Below are positions 1 through 63,528 of a DNA stretch of 64,000 nucleotides, in pieces. The position numbers were made by a program, and so were the translations under genes. The notes under the pieces are model-generated. The model searched no databases, had not been told where the DNA came from, and was given only the letters and a program-made list of their open reading frames with translations. Source of the stretch: Paraphysomonas bandaiensis (Eukaryota; Protista; Chrysophyceae); the NCBI GenBank assembly GCA_965644295.1, contig CBFFRP010000071.1:1-64000 (forward strand), written 5' to 3'. Every line of letters begins with the position of its first letter. Position 1 is the first letter of the stretch.

Positions 1-349
1 ACTATTCAGGGTGCTCCATGCGGTCTATGCATGTATATGTGTGGGGGTGTTCTGTATGTATATGTGTGTATCTGCTGCGGTATTATTCATATGATCATAC
101 GAGTCTCTCTCCTCATGAGGAGCACACACCACTATACACCACTATGACCACACACTGTTGATAGTCCTCACTCGTGTCTGTGAGTAGAGGCAGCAGCAGA
201 GCCTCTGAATCATGTACTCATATATGCATATACCATATCACATTCACTTCGAAGTGAGCCAGAGATATACACTCTTATACGCACACGTATACCTGTGTAT
301 TCCATATACACAGTATACAGAGAATACGTAGCTTCACAGTTGTAGCAAA

Positions 350-397
350 AGCTTCACATATGCACTCATTATATGTATGGACTGCATATGTGAAGCT
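350..397. other. Candidate recombination junction: perfect 15-bp inverted repeat AGCTTCACATATGCA / TGCATATGTGAAGCT around an 18-bp spacer CTCATTATATGTATGGAC (also at 2636-2683 and 4922-4969)
   Basis: Read directly from the sequence. The array terminates inside this spacer at 7227. Confidence 0.75.
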
Positions 398-2661
398 CCA
401 TGGGTTTTTTCCTCATCTAAAAACCCCTAGTGTGAAGCCAAAAGCTTCACATATGCCTCGAATACGGACAAATATATAGTAGATAATCATATTCAATGCA
501 TATGTGAAGCTTTAGGCTTCACACAAAAACCGGCACTTTTATATAATAAAAATACCATTTTACAGGGAAATAGCCACTTTATTTGTTGTAAAACACTGTT
601 AGAATACTCTACTATTCTCCTTGAACATGACAGCCGTTAGTGGCATATATCAATATTCGACCATAGTTACTGCAAACATGAGTGAGACATGTTCAGGCAG
701 GGAGGAAGAGTTACCTCAAAGGGGAAGAGGAAGTGGCCGTATACGCCGACAGCCGGTTGTGTCTGTTGACTCCAATGCTGATAATGTATCTGACTATAAG
801 AAGAAACGAACAATAGCAGGAGTGAAATCAGCATACAAGCAAAGGTTGGCCATATTGCAGTGTGGTGTAAAGCAGAGTACCCTGAAGCTCTAGATGATGA
901 TGAAATTTTGAAGATTCCATTCCCGAAAGACATCTGTCTTGATTACTTTGGCCATATGTAGAACTAAGCCAGGCCGTAGATGGCTACAAGAAAGACATCA
1001 ATGAACTGAAGAAGAAAGAACTCATGAAAGAAGAAGGGGTTAAAAGTCCGTTAAAAATGAATGGCTGTACGATTTTAGCGACGAAGATGATGTTAATGGT
1101 ATCATTGCAGACAGTTGGTCCTATATCTTGTTCATGTGGGAATATTTTGTACTGATGTGGAATTTGATGAGTAGATCTAATTCAGTAGCTTCCTTGATGA
1201 TTGAACTTTTGACTGGGAAGGTGACTCAATGCTTGTTCAAGACCAAGGACACAAAGCGGACAGAAGAGTCAGTGACAAAGAAGAGCATCATGCAAGACAA
1301 AAAATGTAAATGTAATGTGCAATGGTGGAAAACCTTTAACTGACAAGATGGTCAGATTATGCACTTCGTTCCAAAGGGTTGGAGATTTACAGCCAGAATA
1401 CCATTGATCCGTCTGTATGATTTATGGTTCTATGGAGATAGGGTGAGCTGAATAAGACCATATCGTCTCATAAGTCGTCGGTTTGACGTTTGACATACAG
1501 AAGAGTGATGTTATTGCTTTTATTCGAGCTAGTACAGTGCGTGATGTCATTTGTTAATACCATCGTGAGTGATAATGGGCTGCTGCCAGATGGATACAGC
1601 AACTTCAATAATGTTCCTCCACGTGCTAATGATGAAATATATTCTAGTGTGCTGGATATAATTGTGAATTTCGTACGTAGCTTGTACAATGAAATCTGCA
1701 TGTTGAATCGTGTACGGCATTGATAGTTCTTTAATTTTAAGTGTGCATATCAAAAGCTACAATTTCTTAGCTACAACAACGTCATCTTGATAAATGATAA
1801 GTAAACAACTCTACACGGTATGACACACAATGATAAAAACATATGTACATACATACGTTATCTACGACAACACCTTCATACAAACATGCACACACATCTT
1901 ATGTACGACATCACCTTAATCTTGATTAATGATATATGTAAACTTCAGTCATATTTACAGGACACAGCAGATCATTACGAAGGATAGAGTAGTAGAAGTC
2001 ATATCGTCGACAGGCTCTTCACTGGTTGGGTCGTAAGAGGCGTCCCTATACCACATACATACACTCCCACCACCCCCACAACTCATCCACACTCTCATAC
2101 TACTCATATGCTATCCTTATAGAGGAAGTCCTCATATGGATGATCACCACCAGCTCCATAAACAACATCGTCACAGTCTTCTAACGGATACATATGCTTC
2201 CACAGCACCATTAATGCAGATACACCATATAAAATAACATACTCAGAGGCGCATTAGTGGTGAACACTTCTAGTGCAGTTGTATGACTATTCAGGGTGCT
2301 CCATGCGGTCTATGCATGTATATGTGTGGGGGTGTTCTGTATGTATATGTGTGTATCTGCTGCGGTATTATTCATATGATCATACGAGTCTCTCTCCTCA
2401 TGAGGAGCACACACCACTATACACCACTATGACCACACACTGTTGATAGTCCTCACTCGTGTCTGTGAGTAGAGGCAGCAGCAGAGCCTCTGAATCATGT
2501 ACTCATATATGCATATACCATATCACATTCACTTCGAAGTGAGCCAGAGATATACACTCTTATACGCACACGTATACCTGTGTATTCCATATACACAGTA
2601 TACAGAGAATACGTAGCTTCACAGTTGTAGCAAAAAGCTTCACATATGCACTCATTATATG
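376..2661 (+). mobile_element. Non-autonomous, decayed CryptonS-like tyrosine-recombinase transposon (unit of the array)
   Basis: Across frameshifts and stops it translates as AYKQRLAIL..WCKAEYPEALDDDEILKIPFPKDICLDYFGH, then YFVLMWNLMSRSNSVASL..FDWEGDSMLV (YR first catalytic Arg region), then TFN*QDGQIMHFVPKGWRF..LYDLWFYGD..*IRPY. These resemble stramenopile Crypton proteins as I recall them. The ends carry 15-bp inverted repeats. Confidence 0.75.
678..1800 (+). pseudogene. Tyrosine recombinase pseudogene with frameshifts, in-frame stops and internal deletion of the H-x-x-R/Y half; repeated at +2286 and +4572; 3' end approximate
   Basis: Begins MSETCSG at 678, frameshifts near 860, has TGA where W/G is expected (TFN*Q, VS*IRPY), and jumps from DSMLV straight to the C-terminal domain. 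Confidence 0.7.
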
Positions 2662-5600
2662 TATGGACTGCATATGTGAAGCTCCATGGGTTTTTTCCTC
2701 ATCTAAAAACCCCTAGTGTGAAGCCAAAAGCTTCACATATGCCTCGAATACGGACAAATATATAGTAGATAATCATATTCAATGCATATGTGAAGCTTTA
2801 GGCTTCACACAAAAACCGGCACTTTTATATAATAAAAATACCATTTTACAGGGAAATAGCCACTTTATTTGTTGTAAAACACTGTTAGAATACTCTACTA
2901 TTCTCCTTGAACATGACAGCCGTTAGTGGCATATATCAATATTCGACCATAGTTACTGCAAACATGAGTGAGACATGTTCAGGCAGGGAGGAAGAGTTAC
3001 CTCAAAGGGGAAGAGGAAGTGGCCGTATACGCCGACAGCCGGTTGTGTCTGTTGACTCCAATGCTGATAATGTATCTGACTATAAGAAGAAACGAACAAT
3101 AGCAGGAGTGAAATCAGCATACAAGCAAAGGTTGGCCATATTGCAGTGTGGTGTAAAGCAGAGTACCCTGAAGCTCTAGATGATGATGAAATTTTGAAGA
3201 TTCCATTCCCGAAAGACATCTGTCTTGATTACTTTGGCCATATGTAGAACTAAGCCAGGCCGTAGATGGCTACAAGAAAGACATCAATGAACTGAAGAAG
3301 AAAGAACTCATGAAAGAAGAAGGGGTTAAAAGTCCGTTAAAAATGAATGGCTGTACGATTTTAGCGACGAAGATGATGTTAATGGTATCATTGCAGACAG
3401 TTGGTCCTATATCTTGTTCATGTGGGAATATTTTGTACTGATGTGGAATTTGATGAGTAGATCTAATTCAGTAGCTTCCTTGATGATTGAACTTTTGACT
3501 GGGAAGGTGACTCAATGCTTGTTCAAGACCAAGGACACAAAGCGGACAGAAGAGTCAGTGACAAAGAAGAGCATCATGCAAGACAAAAAATGTAAATGTA
3601 ATGTGCAATGGTGGAAAACCTTTAACTGACAAGATGGTCAGATTATGCACTTCGTTCCAAAGGGTTGGAGATTTACAGCCAGAATACCATTGATCCGTCT
3701 GTATGATTTATGGTTCTATGGAGATAGGGTGAGCTGAATAAGACCATATCGTCTCATAAGTCGTCGGTTTGACGTTTGACATACAGAAGAGTGATGTTAT
3801 TGCTTTTATTCGAGCTAGTACAGTGCGTGATGTCATTTGTTAATACCATCGTGAGTGATAATGGGCTGCTGCCAGATGGATACAGCAACTTCAATAATGT
3901 TCCTCCACGTGCTAATGATGAAATATATTCTAGTGTGCTGGATATAATTGTGAATTTCGTACGTAGCTTGTACAATGAAATCTGCATGTTGAATCGTGTA
4001 CGGCATTGATAGTTCTTTAATTTTAAGTGTGCATATCAAAAGCTACAATTTCTTAGCTACAACAACGTCATCTTGATAAATGATAAGTAAACAACTCTAC
4101 ACGGTATGACACACAATGATAAAAACATATGTACATACATACGTTATCTACGACAACACCTTCATACAAACATGCACACACATCTTATGTACGACATCAC
4201 CTTAATCTTGATTAATGATATATGTAAACTTCAGTCATATTTACAGGACACAGCAGATCATTACGAAGGATAGAGTAGTAGAAGTCATATCGTCGACAGG
4301 CTCTTCACTGGTTGGGTCGTAAGAGGCGTCCCTATACCACATACATACACTCCCACCACCCCCACAACTCATCCACACTCTCATACTACTCATATGCTAT
4401 CCTTATAGAGGAAGTCCTCATATGGATGATCACCACCAGCTCCATAAACAACATCGTCACAGTCTTCTAACGGATACATATGCTTCCACAGCACCATTAA
4501 TGCAGATACACCATATAAAATAACATACTCAGAGGCGCATTAGTGGTGAACACTTCTAGTGCAGTTGTATGACTATTCAGGGTGCTCCATGCGGTCTATG
4601 CATGTATATGTGTGGGGGTGTTCTGTATGTATATGTGTGTATCTGCTGCGGTATTATTCATATGATCATACGAGTCTCTCTCCTCATGAGGAGCACACAC
4701 CACTATACACCACTATGACCACACACTGTTGATAGTCCTCACTCGTGTCTGTGAGTAGAGGCAGCAGCAGAGCCTCTGAATCATGTACTCATATATGCAT
4801 ATACCATATCACATTCACTTCGAAGTGAGCCAGAGATATACACTCTTATACGCACACGTATACCTGTGTATTCCATATACACAGTATACAGAGAATACGT
4901 AGCTTCACAGTTGTAGCAAAAAGCTTCACATATGCACTCATTATATGTATGGACTGCATATGTGAAGCTCCATGGGTTTTTTCCTCATCTAAAAACCCCT
5001 AGTGTGAAGCCAAAAGCTTCACATATGCCTCGAATACGGACAAATATATAGTAGATAATCATATTCAATGCATATGTGAAGCTTTAGGCTTCACACAAAA
5101 ACCGGCACTTTTATATAATAAAAATACCATTTTACAGGGAAATAGCCACTTTATTTGTTGTAAAACACTGTTAGAATACTCTACTATTCTCCTTGAACAT
5201 GACAGCCGTTAGTGGCATATATCAATATTCGACCATAGTTACTGCAAACATGAGTGAGACATGTTCAGGCAGGGAGGAAGAGTTACCTCAAAGGGGAAGA
5301 GGAAGTGGCCGTATACGCCGACAGCCGGTTGTGTCTGTTGACTCCAATGCTGATAATGTATCTGACTATAAGAAGAAACGAACAATAGCAGGAGTGAAAT
5401 CAGCATACAAGCAAAGGTTGGCCATATTGCAGTGTGGTGTAAAGCAGAGTACCCTGAAGCTCTAGATGATGATGAAATTTTGAAGATTCCATTCCCGAAA
5501 GACATCTGTCTTGATTACTTTGGCCATATGTAGAACTAAGCCAGGCCGTAGATGGCTACAAGAAAGACATCAATGAACTGAAGAAGAAAGAACTCATGAA

Positions 5601-7225
5601 AGAAGAAGGGGTTAAAAGTCCGTTAAAAATGAATGGCTGTACGATTTTAGCGACGAAGATGATGTTAATGGTATCATTGCAGACAGTTGGTCCTATATCT
5701 TGTTCATGTGGGAATATTTTGTACTGATGTGGAATTTGATGAGTAGATCTAATTCAGTAGCTTCCTTGATGATTGAACTTTTGACTGGGAAGGTGACTCA
5801 ATGCTTGTTCAAGACCAAGGACACAAAGCGGACAGAAGAGTCAGTGACAAAGAAGAGCATCATGCAAGACAAAAAATGTAAATGTAATGTGCAATGGTGG
5901 AAAACCTTTAACTGACAAGATGGTCAGATTATGCACTTCGTTCCAAAGGGTTGGAGATTTACAGCCAGAATACCATTGATCCGTCTGTATGATTTATGGT
6001 TCTATGGAGATAGGGTGAGCTGAATAAGACCATATCGTCTCATAAGTCGTCGGTTTGACGTTTGACATACAGAAGAGTGATGTTATTGCTTTTATTCGAG
6101 CTAGTACAGTGCGTGATGTCATTTGTTAATACCATCGTGAGTGATAATGGGCTGCTGCCAGATGGATACAGCAACTTCAATAATGTTCCTCCACGTGCTA
6201 ATGATGAAATATATTCTAGTGTGCTGGATATAATTGTGAATTTCGTACGTAGCTTGTACAATGAAATCTGCATGTTGAATCGTGTACGGCATTGATAGTT
6301 CTTTAATTTTAAGTGTGCATATCAAAAGCTACAATTTCTTAGCTACAACAACGTCATCTTGATAAATGATAAGTAAACAACTCTACACGGTATGACACAC
6401 AATGATAAAAACATATGTACATACATACGTTATCTACGACAACACCTTCATACAAACATGCACACACATCTTATGTACGACATCACCTTAATCTTGATTA
6501 ATGATATATGTAAACTTCAGTCATATTTACAGGACACAGCAGATCATTACGAAGGATAGAGTAGTAGAAGTCATATCGTCGACAGGCTCTTCACTGGTTG
6601 GGTCGTAAGAGGCGTCCCTATACCACATACATACACTCCCACCACCCCCACAACTCATCCACACTCTCATACTACTCATATGCTATCCTTATAGAGGAAG
6701 TCCTCATATGGATGATCACCACCAGCTCCATAAACAACATCGTCACAGTCTTCTAACGGATACATATGCTTCCACAGCACCATTAATGCAGATACACCAT
6801 ATAAAATAACATACTCAGAGGCGCATTAGTGGTGAACACTTCTAGTGCAGTTGTATGACTATTCAGGGTGCTCCATGCGGTCTATGCATGTATATGTGTG
6901 GGGGTGTTCTGTATGTATATGTGTGTATCTGCTGCGGTATTATTCATATGATCATACGAGTCTCTCTCCTCATGAGGAGCACACACCACTATACACCACT
7001 ATGACCACACACTGTTGATAGTCCTCACTCGTGTCTGTGAGTAGAGGCAGCAGCAGAGCCTCTGAATCATGTACTCATATATGCATATACCATATCACAT
7101 TCACTTCGAAGTGAGCCAGAGATATACACTCTTATACGCACACGTATACCTGTGTATTCCATATACACAGTATACAGAGAATACGTAGCTTCACAGTTGT
7201 AGCAAAAAGCTTCACATATGCACTC

Positions 7226-7595
7226 ATGTATGTATGTATGTATGTATGTATGTATGTATGTATGTATGTATGTATGTATGTATGTATGTATGTATGTATG
7301 TATGTATGTATGTATGTATGTATGTATGTATGTATGTATGTATGTATGTATGTATGTATGTATGTATGTATGTATGTATGTATGTATGTATGTATGTATG
7401 TATGTATGTATGTATGTATGTATGTATGTATGTATGTATGTATGTATGTATGTATGTATGTATGTATGTATGTATGTATGTATGTATGTATGTATGTATG
7501 TATGTATGTATGTATGTATGTATGTATGTATGTATGTATGTATGTATGTATGTATGTATGTATGTATGTATGTATGTATGTATGTATGTATGTAT
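7226..7595. repeat. (ATGT)n microsatellite, about 92 perfect units
   Basis: Read directly from the sequence. Confidence 0.99.
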
Positions 7596-7721: not shown

Positions 7722-10700
7722 ATGATAACAAGTACATCAGATATGAAAGAGCCTCTAATGGTTAATGATATCATAGCCGAGGTGGAGGGCGATCATGAGA
7801 TGACAGAGAGCTTCAGCAGCCCCGCAGACACACACGAGACCTTCCCAAAGCTACTAGAGGAGCATAAGTCACAGCTAGATAAGGCTGCAGAGTATGGTAT
7901 GGACTGGACTGTATTAGCCGTATATCTTTCATATGACTATACATACATACATAACACACGCATGTATATACATACATTGCCATATATAACACACATGTAT
8001 GTGCAGATTACTGTATGGTGTTTCCTGTTGACAAAGAAACACGTGGTCTAACTCGAGATGCCACTCGTTTCTTGAACAAGATGCGTGCAGCAGGACTGGA
8101 TTTGTTTCTCTTTTACAGTATTCGGAAGAATTATATATTTGCAATGATTCGATTGAGTCTCGAGCGACTGCGCATTCTCGCTGATAAACTAGAATTTAAA
8201 ATGCTTCTTGATGAATACAAACTACATGAAGCGGCTTCTGCTGGTAATGAAGAGCTTGGAATTGGTCCGATTGATATTTCACATGAACCGGAGGAAAGTT
8301 ACTTGAAGCCCTACGAGTTAATATACGGGAAGTACAGAGATGAAATCGATGAAAATTTGTACTGGAGACCAGAAGGCCTCAAACATCCATTCCGGTAAAC
8401 TATCTGCAGTGTATCATATATTTGCGAGTGCACTGTATTCGAAATTGACTTCTAAGGATGTAGTCTAGGTAGCCATATGTATTGGTTGCCTTTGTACTGT
8501 ACCTGAGCCATGAAGAAAATACAGTGAACTGACTATTTGACAGGGAGTCCGTGCGTCTTAAACTAACGCAAATCCTTATTGAGGCCAAACCTGAAAATGG
8601 TTCCAATCCAATTAAAGTCCGGTGTGTACTGTTAATCCATACGTGTTAGTTCTCCAACATTGTGACTTGAAACCTACTGTAGTCATCAAATGCTAAAGGG
8701 ACGCATAGCTGGATTTTTTCCTTTACACAACATACCGAAATTAGAAGCCGTGAAAGAGAAATGGTTGCAGCCTCGAAGCCTCCCTTGGGAGCAGCCTTTG
8801 TTCGATATAAAGGTGGTAGCCATGACTATATTTAATTGTGCAATGTGTGGCCTGTAATGTATGCGCATTGGTAATAATTGTTAGAGTTTATATCGCATAC
8901 TGAATTAGCATTCAACATGCATGACATCTATATGCAGGAATATTTCGGTGAAAAAGTGGGGCTGTATTTCAAGTTTATGGGCCACTTCAACTTGTGGTTG
9001 ACTGTTCCTGCAGCGATCGGTATTCCTCTACAGATCTATATTTTGGCTATTAATGACTTCAGTAACCCGACCCAGGTACTGCTATTAGCTTACTAACCGT
9101 GGTAGTATTTGCACATGTGTTGAGCTAGACGATTCATAACTGTATATGGCTACGATTTTGTCTGTTTGTTTACGCTGCTTTTACACAGATAGCGTTTGCG
9201 GTGTTTATCGTCATATGGGCAATCATTATGCTTGAGTTTTGGAAAAGGAAAGAAAAACTTACTGCTCTGGAATGGGGAATGATTGGATTCGAAGATGAAG
9301 AAGTCAACAGGCCTGGTATGTATCTGTATACACTTTATGAGGGCGATATATGTTCAGTATAATTGTTTCTTAGCAAATTGATTGCCATACGATTTCATGT
9401 AGTACTATGTGGAGACGCTATTGTGAAATTCTTGTTCGCCTGTTTACTCTATCATAACATATTTTTTGTGGTACTAACTGCGTATCGCGATATTAGAGTT
9501 CAAAGGGGATACCATCAAGTCATTCGTGGATGGCAAGGAAATAATGCACTTTCCCCAGAAGAAGCGGAACTCACTCATTATCGAAAGCTGCGTCGTGATT
9601 GGTGTTCTAATTGCTGTTGTAATTGGGGCGGTAAGATCTGTGTGAACATTGTCTCAATCGTACTGTATACCGAGTATTCATACACCAAAAATACGCTTAC
9701 AATGCATGCCAAATGGACTTAGTAGCAATATTTCCAACTTAATGGTGTTTATAACTTTTTATGAATGAAACATAACATGCCACAGGTCGTTAGCATTTAC
9801 ATTATGCGACGAGCACTATCCAAGCCACTTGGATCTAATGCCCAAACAGTTGCATCGATTGCAAACTCAGTACAAATTAGTATTTTTAATGCGATATACT
9901 CTCTTGTGGCGGACTGGCTTACTACCCGAGAGAACCACCGCACGGACACAGAATTTGAAGATAGCATGATATCCAAACTGTTTCTGTTCCAGGTCAGTAC
10001 TACTACTTTACGATCGAAAGTTATTTTATCACGATTACTTGTTTTGTCGATATCATCAAACTAACTTGATATCACAGTTTGTGAATTCATACGCTTCCTT
10101 CTTTTACATTGCCTTCATCGCGCCGTATCAGCCACCGTCCCCTGATGCTCAGGATAACTGGAAGGGGGATTGCGGTGCTGTGAACTGCATGAAACCTCTT
10201 GCTGTCAATCTCGCCATCATATTCGGTACGCGGTTAACTACGAAGATGTCGTTGTCGACACTGTTCAATAAACCATATGCATGATTTATTCTTGTGTGGT
10301 GATTGAGATACTCATAGAACTCACTTTTAATTTGAACAGGCATACGATTGACTGTGGGAAACATTACAGAGCTTGCGATTCCTTATATTCTCTTTCTTAG
10401 GTAGCTGTTCGTGATTATGTTTGATAGTATACGTCTTGTGCGGTGTAGTTTTGTACACATTTTCATAGATATGGTTGAAAGTATACGGTTTGGTTATATC
10501 TCACTCGTCTCATTGTATACAGGAAGTATGCCCAAGAGATGGCGTTTGCTGACGGCGAGCTGCTGCGACCAGAAAGGGAGTTTATGCTATCCCGGGTGCG
10601 CAACATTGCATGTCACTTCACTTTTCATACTTCTGTGTCAATTATGTAACGTTTCAGCTTTTGACATTGTGTTTATTATATATATTCAGTATAATATTAT

Positions 10701-11578
10701 GAAGTCGAGTCTCAATGACTATGCGGAAATTGCAATTAATTTCGGGTTCATTGCTTTGTTCGTGACTGCACTGCCAATTGCCGCCCTGGCTGGCTTTGTC
10801 TCCAGTTGGCTGGAGATCAAGGCAGACGCCTGGAAACTGATGTTGATATATCAGCGCCCAATTCCAGCTGGTGCAGAGGACATCGGGATGTGGTACGTGT
10901 ATCACAGATGCGTGTTGTGTATTCTAGAATTTTAGGGGGATAGCGTCTGTTGCGCACATCTGTACTCTTCTTACATTTGTACCCTTTTGTTACATATTTT
11001 GCAGGCAGGAGATATTTACCATAATATCTGTATGTGCATGCGTCACCAATGCTGCATTGTCTGTATTTACCATGGATGTGCTCAACGACTACTCGGACAT
11101 CACACGTATGTGGTTCTTTGTAGTGTTCCAGTGGGCATGTTTTGCCATTCAGGTGGGGATATGATTTCAATGTAGTACTTGTCACTATTGACTTCTCTTA
11201 AGATGTGTGCGATGGCTATTGTTCCTGATGAGCCCGCTGAAGTAGCCATACAAAATGCTAGACGGTATGGAAATTTTCTCACGCATTATTTGTACACATT
11301 GGGTACTATGACTTTTTCTAATCGTTATGTAGACTATGTCTTTTTGTTGTTCATGATACATATGTTGCCGTTGATACGAAATGACACTCTTTATACGTCA
11401 CAGGGAGTTTTTGGTGAACAAGGTTGTGATGCAAATTGCTGATGAGCAACTTGGTGGAGGAGAGGCTGAAACTTCTCCCCGTGAGGAATTGGGGCAGTAC
11501 ATATTGCATGAATATACAAAGAATGCTGACGAAGTCAGGGCCGAATTTACCCCAGTACAGGACAAGAAGGATGCATAG
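7722..11578 (+). CDS. Anoctamin/TMEM16 family Ca-activated chloride channel or scramblase, multi-exon
   Basis: Motifs EYFGEKVGLYF, ENHRTDTEFEDSMISKLFLFQFVNSYASFFYIAF, DYAEIAINFGFIALFVTALP, YQRPIPAGAEDIGMW. First intron 7897-8006 is GT-AG. Ends KKDA*. Confidence 0.93.
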
Positions 11579-36481: not shown

Positions 36482-37064
36482 TGTAACGACTACGGGTGAT
36501 TGAGCCTCGCTATCATGACTAACATTGCTGGTCTTATCATCCCTGTCCATGTGCACAGGTGATGTGGGGTAGGATAGTCTTCTCACAACACTCTTCACTT
36601 AACTTCCTCTTCTTACTCTTTACTTCGCTACTTCTTAACTTTCAACTCAACTACGATATCAACTTTCACTATTATATCTAAAACTCCATATCCTTCTACC
36701 TATATCCCCATAGTTAATTCTAGAAGTGATTTCCCAGCCATAAATAGCTAGTTTTCTACTTCCAGAAATAATCATATAGAAATCCCTTAACATCCTGCTA
36801 TCTACTCCTATATCATCCTACAGAATACCTACGTATACCATCATAATACTGTACGGGTTACCATGAACGTCCGTTACATCCGTATGTACGGGTAGTTCCG
36901 GTACACTCCAACCCTATATCTGGCCTTAATACTCGTATCTTCTGATCTAATCATAACTACCATCTACATCTCATTTCATACTACAACCTACATCACTTCA
37001 TCTTATTCTTCAGCCATAACAACCTCCTAAATCACCCATACTTGTCATACCCAATTTTGCTACA
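36482..37064 (-). repeat. 3' LTR (583 bp)
   Basis: Copy of 40467-41049, preceded on the minus strand by a purine tract. Confidence 0.95.
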
Positions 37065-58103: not shown

Positions 58104-61100
58104 GTATACCACTGTCGGTCAAAACCATGTCATCGGTCAAAACCGTGTCATTCCCTTTTTTTCAGTTTTTGTATTTTGAGTGATTATTATGATCATATCC
58201 AACTTTGTCACTCCGTATCTCCACTGATACAAAACCATCCACACCTATCAGCATATCCTCATGTTTATCTTGCTCTGCTCTTCCAAATTATCCAAATTGT
58301 TGTGGGGTTTGAGCTAAATACTGCTCCGTTCTGTCCCTCACATTTCACCTCTCCCGCAACTGAGATTCCACGATCCCAACCAACAGAGACAGACTTTAAG
58401 TGATGGGAAATGGTGTGAATGATGGGTGTTGTGAAAGTGGCGACATCTTGCATCTGCTTGTCACCTCCCGAATGTTTCATTGTTGTGAATGTCACACTTA
58501 TAGATCTCTCTGTCGCATGTGTCCTGCACATATACACGTCTTAAGTATACATACATTGCACAAACGTATACGTATATGTGCTATATATGTACTGCGCACA
58601 CATATATGTGCGAATTATATGTATATGTTACATATATAAGTCTCTGTTACATACATGCTGCCCATATATATATGTGTGTGTCTCTGTCACAAATGTACTG
58701 CATATATATATATGTGCCATATGAATACTTCACACTAATACACGTCTGTGACACATATATACTTCAAACATCTATGTATGTATGTCATATATAAACTGCA
58801 AGCTTATATATGTCTCTGTTACATATGATGTGCGATATGTAAATATGTCATGTCTATGTTATATGTACACTGCACACATAAAGTGTATATCAGGGCTAGG
58901 GAACAATATATTGCAATACTATTGTGACGTATCGTCCCACCAATACCTAGTTCAATTGTATTTTAAGAGTCTATTGATACTATTACAATGTATTGCAATA
59001 TACATATTACAATATATTGCAAGAGCATTAATATATATATAAGTAGTCCGTTGCTAATTACTTACGTTCACTTCATTTCTAGTACTGTTTTTTAAGAGTA
59101 CATGAGCTTATCACAAACTGTAATGCCTAACACCATTCCAATACTCGCATTAACGCCATATTCACAATGTATGTCTTCAATTCACTATTATTTGAAAGAT
59201 GTGTGCATCAGGCCACAAGTGGCGATTAGCTCTTGAAAATAGAATCACATCAAGTGTATCGGGATGAGTGTGCAATGAGTACTTTTGCGCAGGACGGAGA
59301 TGATAAGTTTAGCTACGCTGACTAATCTTTCACGTGTATTTGACGTGCAGACAACATGACAGTATACCTGTACCTTGGTGTCTAACGTTTTTCCTCTTCA
59401 GTTTCTGGGAGGCCTGCGTCAACCTTTGTCCAACTCCGAATTTTTTATATTTAATATTGTTCTAACTTGCGATTATTATTATATTATGCATGTTGGGCAG
59501 TTACGGTTATTCATGGAGGGTAGGCTGCAGTATATGGTACGCAATAGTTGAGTCTGTACGTCTGTACTGTGCTATAGTAATTCGTAATTCCTACTTTCTA
59601 TCATCTCTTGACATATTTGGATGGTGAAATACCTTAATTAACTATTCTTGAAGTCACACAGTAATAAATTAATAAAATTATAATCAACATCTCTCACTAT
59701 TCACTGATATTCGTTACAATTATATTCTCTCAACTACCAAAAAATATTATCAGATCTTAGAAGCCACGATCTTATACAGTCAAAGTGTTTCAGGTTCACT
59801 GCTTTTTTCTCATTCTATCTTTAGTTCAAGTAATACTGTATTCACAACTGCATTCTTCACGTAACAGCCGTAATTCAGATACCTTTGAAATACAGGTTCT
59901 AAATGCTTACGAACAGCAAAACTCATCTCTTTCATTCGATGAGTAGTATTAATAATATCGCCAACATCAATGATATTACATTGCAAAAATGTAGACTTAA
60001 TTAGATCTCTGGTCTTTTTAATTAATAGCATGCATATAATTCTCGCGAGTTAGAATAATATTATATATGAAAAATTCTGAGTTGGACACAGAAGGTTGAT
60101 GCAGTCCTCCCAGAAGCTGAAGAAGCGAAAAGTTGAGACATCAAGGTATCTATGAGTAAGGCTCTTCTATTATTCATCAAGCTACGGGAGAATAGTGATG
60201 AATAATCTCTAAATTCGTTATATAGTCATGCGTTTTTCGTGTACACTTCGGTCAAGTAATATAAGTTTTGCAGAATCCATACAAGCTCTGTACACTACAC
60301 ACTACAGACACTATTCGTCACCTTGAATGATCCGTCATCTTGGTAAAGATGTTTTGCTGTTTCTAGTACAGTGGTCCAAGAATTGATGCACCACCTACAT
60401 GATTTCAATCCAAAAGTGATCAACTTTATGTCATTGTGGAATATCGTCTAGTTGATCGCTACATAGAACCCTATGCCTTTAACTATGCTCACAAAATGCA
60501 TCCAAATCAACTTTACGATTTACAGATGATATAGAGACACTATATAAGCAATATTGTCTGCACGTCAAATACACGTGAAAGATTAGTCAGCGTAGCTAAA
60601 CTTATCATCTCCGTCCTGCGCAAAAGTACTCATTGCACACTCATCCCGATACACTTGATGTGATTCTATTTTCAAGAGCTAATCGCCACTTGTGGCCTGA
60701 TGCACACATCTTTCAAATAATAGTGAATTGAAGACATACATTGTGAATATGGCGTTAATGCGAGTATTGGAATGGTGTTAGGCATTACAGTTTGTGATAA
60801 GCTCATGTACTCTTAAAAAACAGTACTAGAAATGAAGTGAACGTAAGTAATTAGCAACGGACTACTTATATATATATTAATGCTATTGCAATATATTGTA
60901 ATATGTATATTGCAATACATTGTAATAGTATCAATAGACTCTTAAAATACAATTGAACTAGGTATTGGTGGGACGATACGTCACAATAGTATTGCAATAT
61001 ATTGTTCCCTAGCCCTGATATACACTTTATGTGTGCAGTGTACATATAACATAGACATGACATATTTACATATCGCACATCATATGTAACAGAGACATAT

Positions 61101-61804
61101 ATAAGCTTGCAGTTTATATATGACATACATACATAGATGTTTGAAGTATATATGTGTCACAGACGTGTATTAGTGTGAAGTATTCATATGGCACATATAT
61201 ATATATGCAGTACATTTGTGACAGAGACACACACACATATATATGGGCAGCATGTATGTAACAGAGACTTATATATGTAACATATACATATAATTCGCAC
61301 ATATATGTGTGCGCAGTACATATATAGCACATATACGTATACGTTTGTGCAATGTATGTATACTTAAGACGTGTATATGTGCAGGACACATGCGACAGAG
61401 AGATCTATAAGTGTGACATTCACAACAATGAAACATTCGGGAGGTGACAAGCAGATGCAAGATGTCGCCACTTTCACAACACCCATCATTCACACCATTT
61501 CCCATCACTTAAAGTCTGTCTCTGTTGGTTGGGATCGTGGAATCTCAGTTGCGGGAGAGGTGAAATGTGAGGGACAGAACGGAGCAGTATTTAGCTCAAA
61601 CCCCACAACAATTTGGATAATTTGGAAGAGCAGAGCAAGATAAACATGAGGATATGCTGATAGGTGTGGATGGTTTTGTATCAGTGGAGATACGGAGTGA
61701 CAAAGTTGGATATGATCATAATAATCACTCAAAATACAAAAACTGAAAAAAAGGGAATGACACGGTTTTGACCGATGACATGGTTTTGACCGACAGTGGT
61801 ATAC
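58104..61804. mobile_element. Foldback-type non-autonomous DNA transposon with ~1251-bp TIRs (58104-59354 and 60554-61804), probable TA target
   Basis: Mirror-image ORFs in the track. Arm coordinates sum to a constant, so there is no net indel, and about 2 substitutions were seen. Termini TA-TACCACTG..CAGTGGTA-TA, with tandem 18-bp subterminal repeats TCGGTCAAAACC(A/G)TGTCA. Confidence 0.85.
59371..60148. mobile_element. Older MITE-like element nested in the foldback spacer, with diverged ~90-bp TIRs (59371-59458 and 60057-60148)
   Basis: TACCTTGGTGTCT..CTTCAGTTTCTGGGAGGCCTGCGTCAACCTT..TGTCCAACTC matches the reverse complement of 60057-60148. TA at both ends. Confidence 0.7.

Positions 61805-62040: not shown

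Positions 62041-63528
<1,488 letters not shown>

Follow-up and report, generated by a model that had tools for sequence, protein, structure and literature searches.

A non-autonomous CryptonS-like element in head-to-tail array at a (TATG)n microsatellite of Paraphysomonas bandaiensis: probable insertion by core match and local amplification

The window, a stretch of 64,000 nucleotides from Paraphysomonas bandaiensis that forms the start of contig C71, opens with copies of one unit arranged head to tail, and the last of these copies passes directly into a long (TATG)n tract. This raises the question what kind of element is present, how it comes to lie in a microsatellite, and whether the array was built up by the arrival of separate copies or at the locus itself. 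The assembly searched comprises 62.6 Mb in 669 contigs; the analysis itself pointed to a marine eukaryote that has axonemal dynein and is probably a stramenopile. In the initial annotation the array was read as a Crypton-type tyrosine-recombinase element whose copies stack by site-specific integration into TATG microsatellites near gene starts.

The array unit has a length of 2,286 bp, and the comparison of the window units showed no differences among the three full ones (Table 1). Each joint comprises two perfect 15-bp inverted arms with an 18-nt spacer between them that includes TATGTATG; repeat and arm coordinates thereby confirm the head-to-tail arrangement described initially. Since the window begins at contig base 1, inside the array, the left end of the C71 array is out of view. 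At the right side, the array stops within the spacer and continues as the tetranucleotide repeat, as had been described, while the last unit is not quite complete, contrary to the same description: its right end is 5 nt shorter than usual, the exact end being present in 14 of 22 free right ends. As judged from its sequence, the subterminal hairpin may offer accessory binding sites.

Table 1. Positions of the array, its joints and the adjoining features in the window.
Feature	Position	Strand	Remarks
3' part of a further unit	1-373	+	corresponds to unit positions 1913-2286, one A deleted; unit cut by contig start
Head-to-tail joint 1, attP-like	350-397		right-end arm 350-364, 8-bp core 371-378, left-end arm 383-397
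Complete unit 1, non-autonomous Crypton	379-2664	+	2,286 bp
Subterminal hairpin	430-524		35-nt arms, 91% complementary; end motif repeated
Recombinase N-terminal remnant, frameshifted	803-1291	+	first catalytic Arg motif (WNLMSR) and HK motif kept; matches P0001 residues 32-83 and 136-249
Conserved C-terminal region, remnant	1323-1717	+	matches P0001 residues 588-643 and 658-733
Head-to-tail joint 2	2636-2683		arms 2636-2650 and 2669-2683, core 2657-2664
Complete unit 2	2665-4950	+	no differences to unit 1
Head-to-tail joint 3	4922-4969		arms 4922-4936 and 4955-4969, core 4943-4950
Unit 3	4951-7227	+	identical to units 1 and 2 except for the right end, 5 nt short
Free right end, attR-like	7208-7227		arm 7208-7222, then straight into the repeat tract
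Perfect (TATG)n tract	7226-7595	+	370 bp with 92.5 units; forms the right side of the target site
Host anoctamin gene, spliced	7722-11439	+	start and end approximate; later exons match Pfam Anoctamin (E 1e-11 to 1e-21); points away from the element

Units that are 100% identical, together with four contigs (C71, C53, C357 and C482) that start inside arrays, could suggest that the array is partly an artefact of assembly or library, produced by reads from free or amplified circles or by a collapsed repeat with a wrong copy number, and metagenome contigs that contain the joint could equally be circles. However, the arrays of C342 and C432 are bounded by free ends left and right, slight differences occur between the units inside C53, C290 and C342, and joint 3 is bridged by a contig of an independent marine metagenome run (X7, record 16, 4880-5198), which has 42 nt on the short side of the joint. 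An artefact of this kind is considered highly improbable.

The identity of the element follows from two remnants that match parts of the intact homologue P0001 (736 aa). The section corresponding to P0001 residues ~250-587, which include the H-x-x-R motif and the catalytic Tyr, is deleted in the window unit directly before the C-terminal remnant, and of the catalytic set R-K-H-R-H-Y the window copies retain the R and K motifs only. A six-frame reading of the window unit gave open frames of at most ~100 codons and, besides the tyrosine-recombinase remnants, no second frame of enzyme length. Since the recombinase is frameshifted and these residues are deleted, the window copies represent a non-autonomous Crypton, which by the reading of its frames cannot encode a working recombinase. 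P0001 and its relatives comprise R210, K237, H322-x-x-R325, H349 and Y359, for which the order of the motifs suggests the respective catalytic roles. The structure model of P0001 (pLDDT 88) matched Cre, XerH, Flp and Ndc10 in a fold search; the assignment to the Cryptons was thus borne out, as the remnants match a protein whose model folds like Cre. This fold search alone was informative, while Pfam and PDB sequence searches with the recombinase returned no useful family.

When the genome was searched with Pfam Phage_integrase, these Cryptons were not recovered; the hits were Polinton-like and other recombinases. A Polinton-like or virophage-type gene cluster occurs twice (L031, G000:C603:6746-10114; L032, G000:C69:337148-340513), with a tyrosine recombinase (Phage_integrase, E 2e-4) beside an A32 packaging ATPase (E 3.5e-14), and the cluster on C69 adjoins the start of a Crypton gene. 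Three loci (L033, L034 and L035) hold small tyrosine-recombinase-like frames unrelated to the window family.

The related C645 protein has named homologues in Phytophthora, Aphanomyces, Lagenidium and an ochromonad. Among 53 homologues no match to GCR1_C was obtained at E 0.1, and two showed weak matches to NDC10_II; the conserved C-terminal block is present in recombinase homologues. The connection between the ends of the family and the recombinase is provided by a decayed copy at C138, which carries a different deletion: since the family's left end and the catalytic second half occur there together, the ends are tied to this enzyme. An intact recombinase gene with the ends of the window family, as looked for on the suggestion of the initial annotation, was found neither in the organism's own assembly nor in metagenomes, where a pattern scan gave 0 hits and a scan of related loci none. 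The nearest candidate in the same genome (C645/L067) differs in its ends, sits at an (AT)n-type site and is interrupted by a stop around residue 620 of ~730.

The joint in the window reads TCAC, 13 nt ending in CATT, the 8-bp core ATATGTAT, 11 nt and GTGA. Intact relatives from unrelated samples keep this TCAC-13-8-11-GTGA spacing with other AT-rich cores, namely ATATATAT in L079, L083, L084, L095, L097 and L108, GAATACAT in L081, CTATACAT in L096 and TTATACGT in L098 (the comparison took in L067, L079, L081, L083/L084/L095, L085, L096, L097, L098 and L108). Where both ends were seen, the last 5-8 core bases are common to them, with no more than 5-6 bases in relatives and 6 bp in the case of L085 from Phytophthora nicotianae; the C645 family of the same genome sits in an (AT)n run. 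Since the spacing is constant and the cores vary, the crossover zone would lie inside the 8-bp core, and the 18-nt spacer, which had been taken as a whole for the crossover spacer, is to be reduced to this 8-nt part; the ends alone place the zone within the core and do not fix the exact cut sites to the base. The core is shared by both ends and present as a single copy at joints, no separate target duplication being observed, and the 15-bp inverted arms are subterminal, 3 and 7 nt back from the shared TATG word. The target sites supply no arms, so the match to the element is limited to the core. With exactly one core copy per tandem joint, the earlier reading of the junction as an attP-like joint holds, and in contigs the joint sequence fits a circle and a tandem alike. 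Neither a free circle nor an unoccupied target site was encountered, Logan contigs being interrupted at repeats.

Some further forms were observed among the relatives and the family copies. In the relative L097 (1857-1900) the orientation of the end-to-end joint is opposite to the gene, unlike in the other relatives, and the intact relative L083/L084 has a left end nearly the same as that of the window family and carries a SET-domain gene as cargo. In four truncated family copies (L014, L028, L051 and L062) a long TATG tract is joined straight to internal element sequence, which in the case of L014 occurs at an internal core-like word. Recombination at cryptic sites or microhomology deletion are candidate readings for these copies.

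The genome pattern search yielded 40 left ends, 16 of them in joints and 24 free, and 37 right ends judged genuine, of which 15 are in joints and 22 free. In the reversed control neither the arm pattern nor the left-end pattern had a match (0), while five loose right-end matches were set aside as chance, since the control gave as many. TATG sequence on the plus strand of the element adjoins each of the 22 right ends that are free and, on the left, 23 of 24; the sole exception is a weak match with 3 mismatches. Since runs of at least five TATG units make up only ~0.95% of the genome (about 0.6 Mb), this flanking lies far beyond chance, and random insertion was rejected on the same ground, long tracts being only ~1% of the genome. 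The expectation of TATG on both sides of the element was therefore confirmed genome-wide, in a fixed orientation.

Repeats of this type are widespread in the organism: (TATG)n is very abundant in the whole genome, and introns in the window often begin with GTATG and carry CATA repeats. The word TATGTATG occurs 183,063 times in the genome, and 147,966 of these occurrences (81%) belong to stretches of at least five units. Such stretches contain 19 of 23 free left ends and 17 of 22 free right ends, a total of 36 of 45 (80%) in which the two ends contributed by a single insertion do not count independently. For an 8-mer the expected share is 81% (p 0.85) and for a 7-mer 69% (p 0.15), whereas a 6-bp word, which would correspond to the 5-6 core bases shared by the ends in relatives, has an expected share of 54% and falls short of the data (p 0.006 on the left and 0.03 on the right); a target of 4-5 bp was rejected, as the expected share of 15-38% is too low. 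Since matching a word of 7-8 bp suffices to produce the microsatellite bias without any further term, a dedicated microsatellite-recognising system, as initially proposed, is not needed. The excess over the 6-bp prediction means that some extra preference or selection may act, and if the true overlap were only 6 bp, an added preference for long tracts or a survival bias is possible.

The position relative to genes has to be considered as well. In the window, the end of the tract and the first ATG of the anoctamin gene are 127 nt apart, which agrees with the close upstream position noted before. Throughout the genome, all 18 Pfam-identified flanking genes (7 left, 11 right) are directed outward, their N-terminal part being closest to the element, a count for which mainly long away-pointing frames were scanned and toward-pointing frames looked like shadows; at C295, C306 and C28 this applies to the neighbours on both sides. 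The occupied tracts lie mostly between divergent gene starts. The insertion sites are thus promoter-side, as had been supposed from the window. However, the window also has short tracts without an element directly upstream of ORF starts (13644 and 49240), so promoter proximity may be a property of the tract.

These observations bear on an alternative in which the site is chosen by the enzyme, or by a host factor bound to long (TATG)n tracts where promoters diverge, for the tract as such and not just for the core word. The share of ends in long runs above the 6-bp prediction, the length of the tracts beside elements (often 100-640 bp), the uniform direction of the neighbouring genes and the microsatellite specificity reported for CryptonV families in the part of the literature covered here (PMC8869645) are in favour of it. 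Against it, the 7- and 8-bp word models fit without an extra term, insertions at short or degenerate TATG sites exist (C360, C608, C279 and C138), element-free tracts of the window are likewise found close to ORF starts, and the survival of harmless insertions would be expected to leave the same pattern. Selection of the tract as such appears unlikely. A wider conjecture, which we regard as equally doubtful, would be a stramenopile Crypton clade with fixed site geometry and an exchangeable 8-bp core, in which the window family has tuned its core to the dominant host microsatellite that marks divergent promoters and the enzyme or a host factor prefers long promoter tracts; a retargetable integrase of this kind would insert between head-to-head genes and amplify itself there.

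Two further features of the window concern other repeats. A large inverted repeat (58115-61793) with mirror tandem-repeat rows at 58115-59022 and 60884-61793 is directly followed by a polyubiquitin gene (62155-63522). The segment 36598-40622 contains a gag/protease-like frame of 1,142 aa on the minus strand with a direct repeat at 36598 and 40583, and is likely an LTR-type retroelement.

Seven arrays of the family were found (C53, C71, C290, C342, C357, C432 and C482). Within the four arrays compared, 0-3 substitutions separate the units, as against 14 to ~240 substitutions, up to 5-10%, between most loci. The single copy at C46 shows 0 differences to a C342 unit. Since the flanks of the two are unrelated, haplotig duplication is ruled out as the source of such identical copies, and the movement is recent. 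Two copies 100 bp apart in one tract of C342 indicate that repeated insertion into a tract does occur. Other Crypton families of this genome (C70, C437, C218 and C478), which have intact genes and no microsatellite, form exact tandems too, and two metagenome contigs of intact relatives showed the same repeated or circular form.

Based on these data, it can be asked whether the arrays result from successive independent insertions of circles from genome-wide sources into a regenerated site, as the initial annotation assumed. If a circle entered a copy already in place at its left end, exactly the joint type of the window would result, the two C342 copies are separate insertions into one tract, and units in C290 and C342 differ by 2-3 substitutions and an indel. 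On the other hand, at least eight variants coexist, yet one variant per array was present in 4 of 4 arrays compared, and the C71 variant is at least 97 substitutions away from every other complete copy compared. Moreover, with 183,000 such words in the genome, a joint has no numerical advantage as a target. Since the arrays are homogeneous inside and divergent between loci, local amplification is favoured, and the occurrence of arrays without microsatellites in other families equally speaks against stacking, which we consider decidedly improbable.

Among the other young Crypton families (L068-L075; C70, C400, C577, C437 and C218), near-identical copies were observed. In the C70 family a 714-aa frame is complete and the core is a loose TCTNNAA; tandem trimers are formed at C437 and C218, and the C218 units carry a gag-like frame.

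Altogether, the locus is probably explained by a non-autonomous, internally deleted Crypton of a stramenopile lineage (CryptonS-like) that is moved in trans by a Cre-like recombinase. According to this explanation, the recombinase would bind the element ends and join them at the core, and the joined ends would cross over with a genomic word matching ~6-8 core bases. With ~80% of the matching words located in long (TATG)n tracts, insertions would end up in microsatellites. The array would be built locally from one founder copy, either by exchange of its right end with the left end carried by the sister chromatid, which would give exactly the joint type of the window, or by re-entry of the founder's own excised circle at the locus, or by integration of a multimer; unequal exchange possibly enlarges the array afterwards.

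The window copies themselves are dead cargo, and their microsatellite-targeting behaviour has precedents. Since Crypton transposition is so far without experimental demonstration (PMC13565253), the useful part is the site at base level together with its natural core variants. From the joints described here and those of nine related loci, a candidate attachment site can be read with single-base resolution, and intact cognate enzymes (e.g. P0001, P0003 and P0006) make excision, circle formation and core-directed targeting directly testable. In addition, the locus illustrates that microsatellite specificity can come simply from a core match and a repeat-rich genome.

An incomplete literature search without Repbase gave no description of exact Crypton tandem arrays or of the end geometry of the window. 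The closest described group is CryptonS, known from oomycetes and a diatom (Kojima and Jurka 2011, PMC3212892). In common with CryptonS, the window family and its relatives show a single tyrosine-recombinase gene, a length of ~3 kb, no GCR1_C match, a conserved C-terminal region and a short direct core at both ends; non-autonomous members are known in CryptonS, and the homologues in Phytophthora, Aphanomyces and an ochromonad fit the host range. TATGG termini, which the initial annotation had mentioned for stramenopile CryptonS, are indeed published, at both ends and for the majority of families, although not required of all (PMC3212892). Unlike CryptonS, the window family has TATGG at its left ends only and shares a core of up to 8 bp; it also combines microsatellite sites and arrays, neither of which is mentioned in the CryptonS paper (PMC3212892). 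Domain features and the host range of homologues fit a CryptonS-like family.

Specific insertion in microsatellites is shared with CryptonV families of cnidarians (Kapitonov and Jurka 2012, known here by citation in PMC8869645). CryptonV is an animal lineage, whereas the window family occurs in a protist and its bias is explained by the core match; as the named homologues are stramenopile, membership in the animal CryptonV recombinase clade is unlikely. For CryptonF-1_cRei of Chlamydomonas reinhardtii, insertion by core match with gain of copies and an enrichment of insertions near gene starts have been reported (PMC9977147). The short terminal word matching the target and the rising copy number are alike, while CryptonF-1_cRei is autonomous and has a 5-bp GC-rich target, the part of that source covered here describing no microsatellite link or arrays (PMC9977147). 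Nimavirus tyrosine recombinases insert in telomere repeats, so that one simple repeat is likewise found on both sides, and concatemers or episomes are possible; these are, however, giant viruses, and their recombinase family is stated to be unrelated to Cryptons (PMC10871703).

With Cre/lox and bacterial integrative elements, the window family has in common the Cre-like fold of P0001 and inverted sites around a core of 6-8 bp. Tandem integration is reportedly known for such bacterial elements, as for SGI1. Unlike in these systems, the target lacks the element's arms and has only the core in common, for which low-specificity conjugative transposons are the closer likeness.
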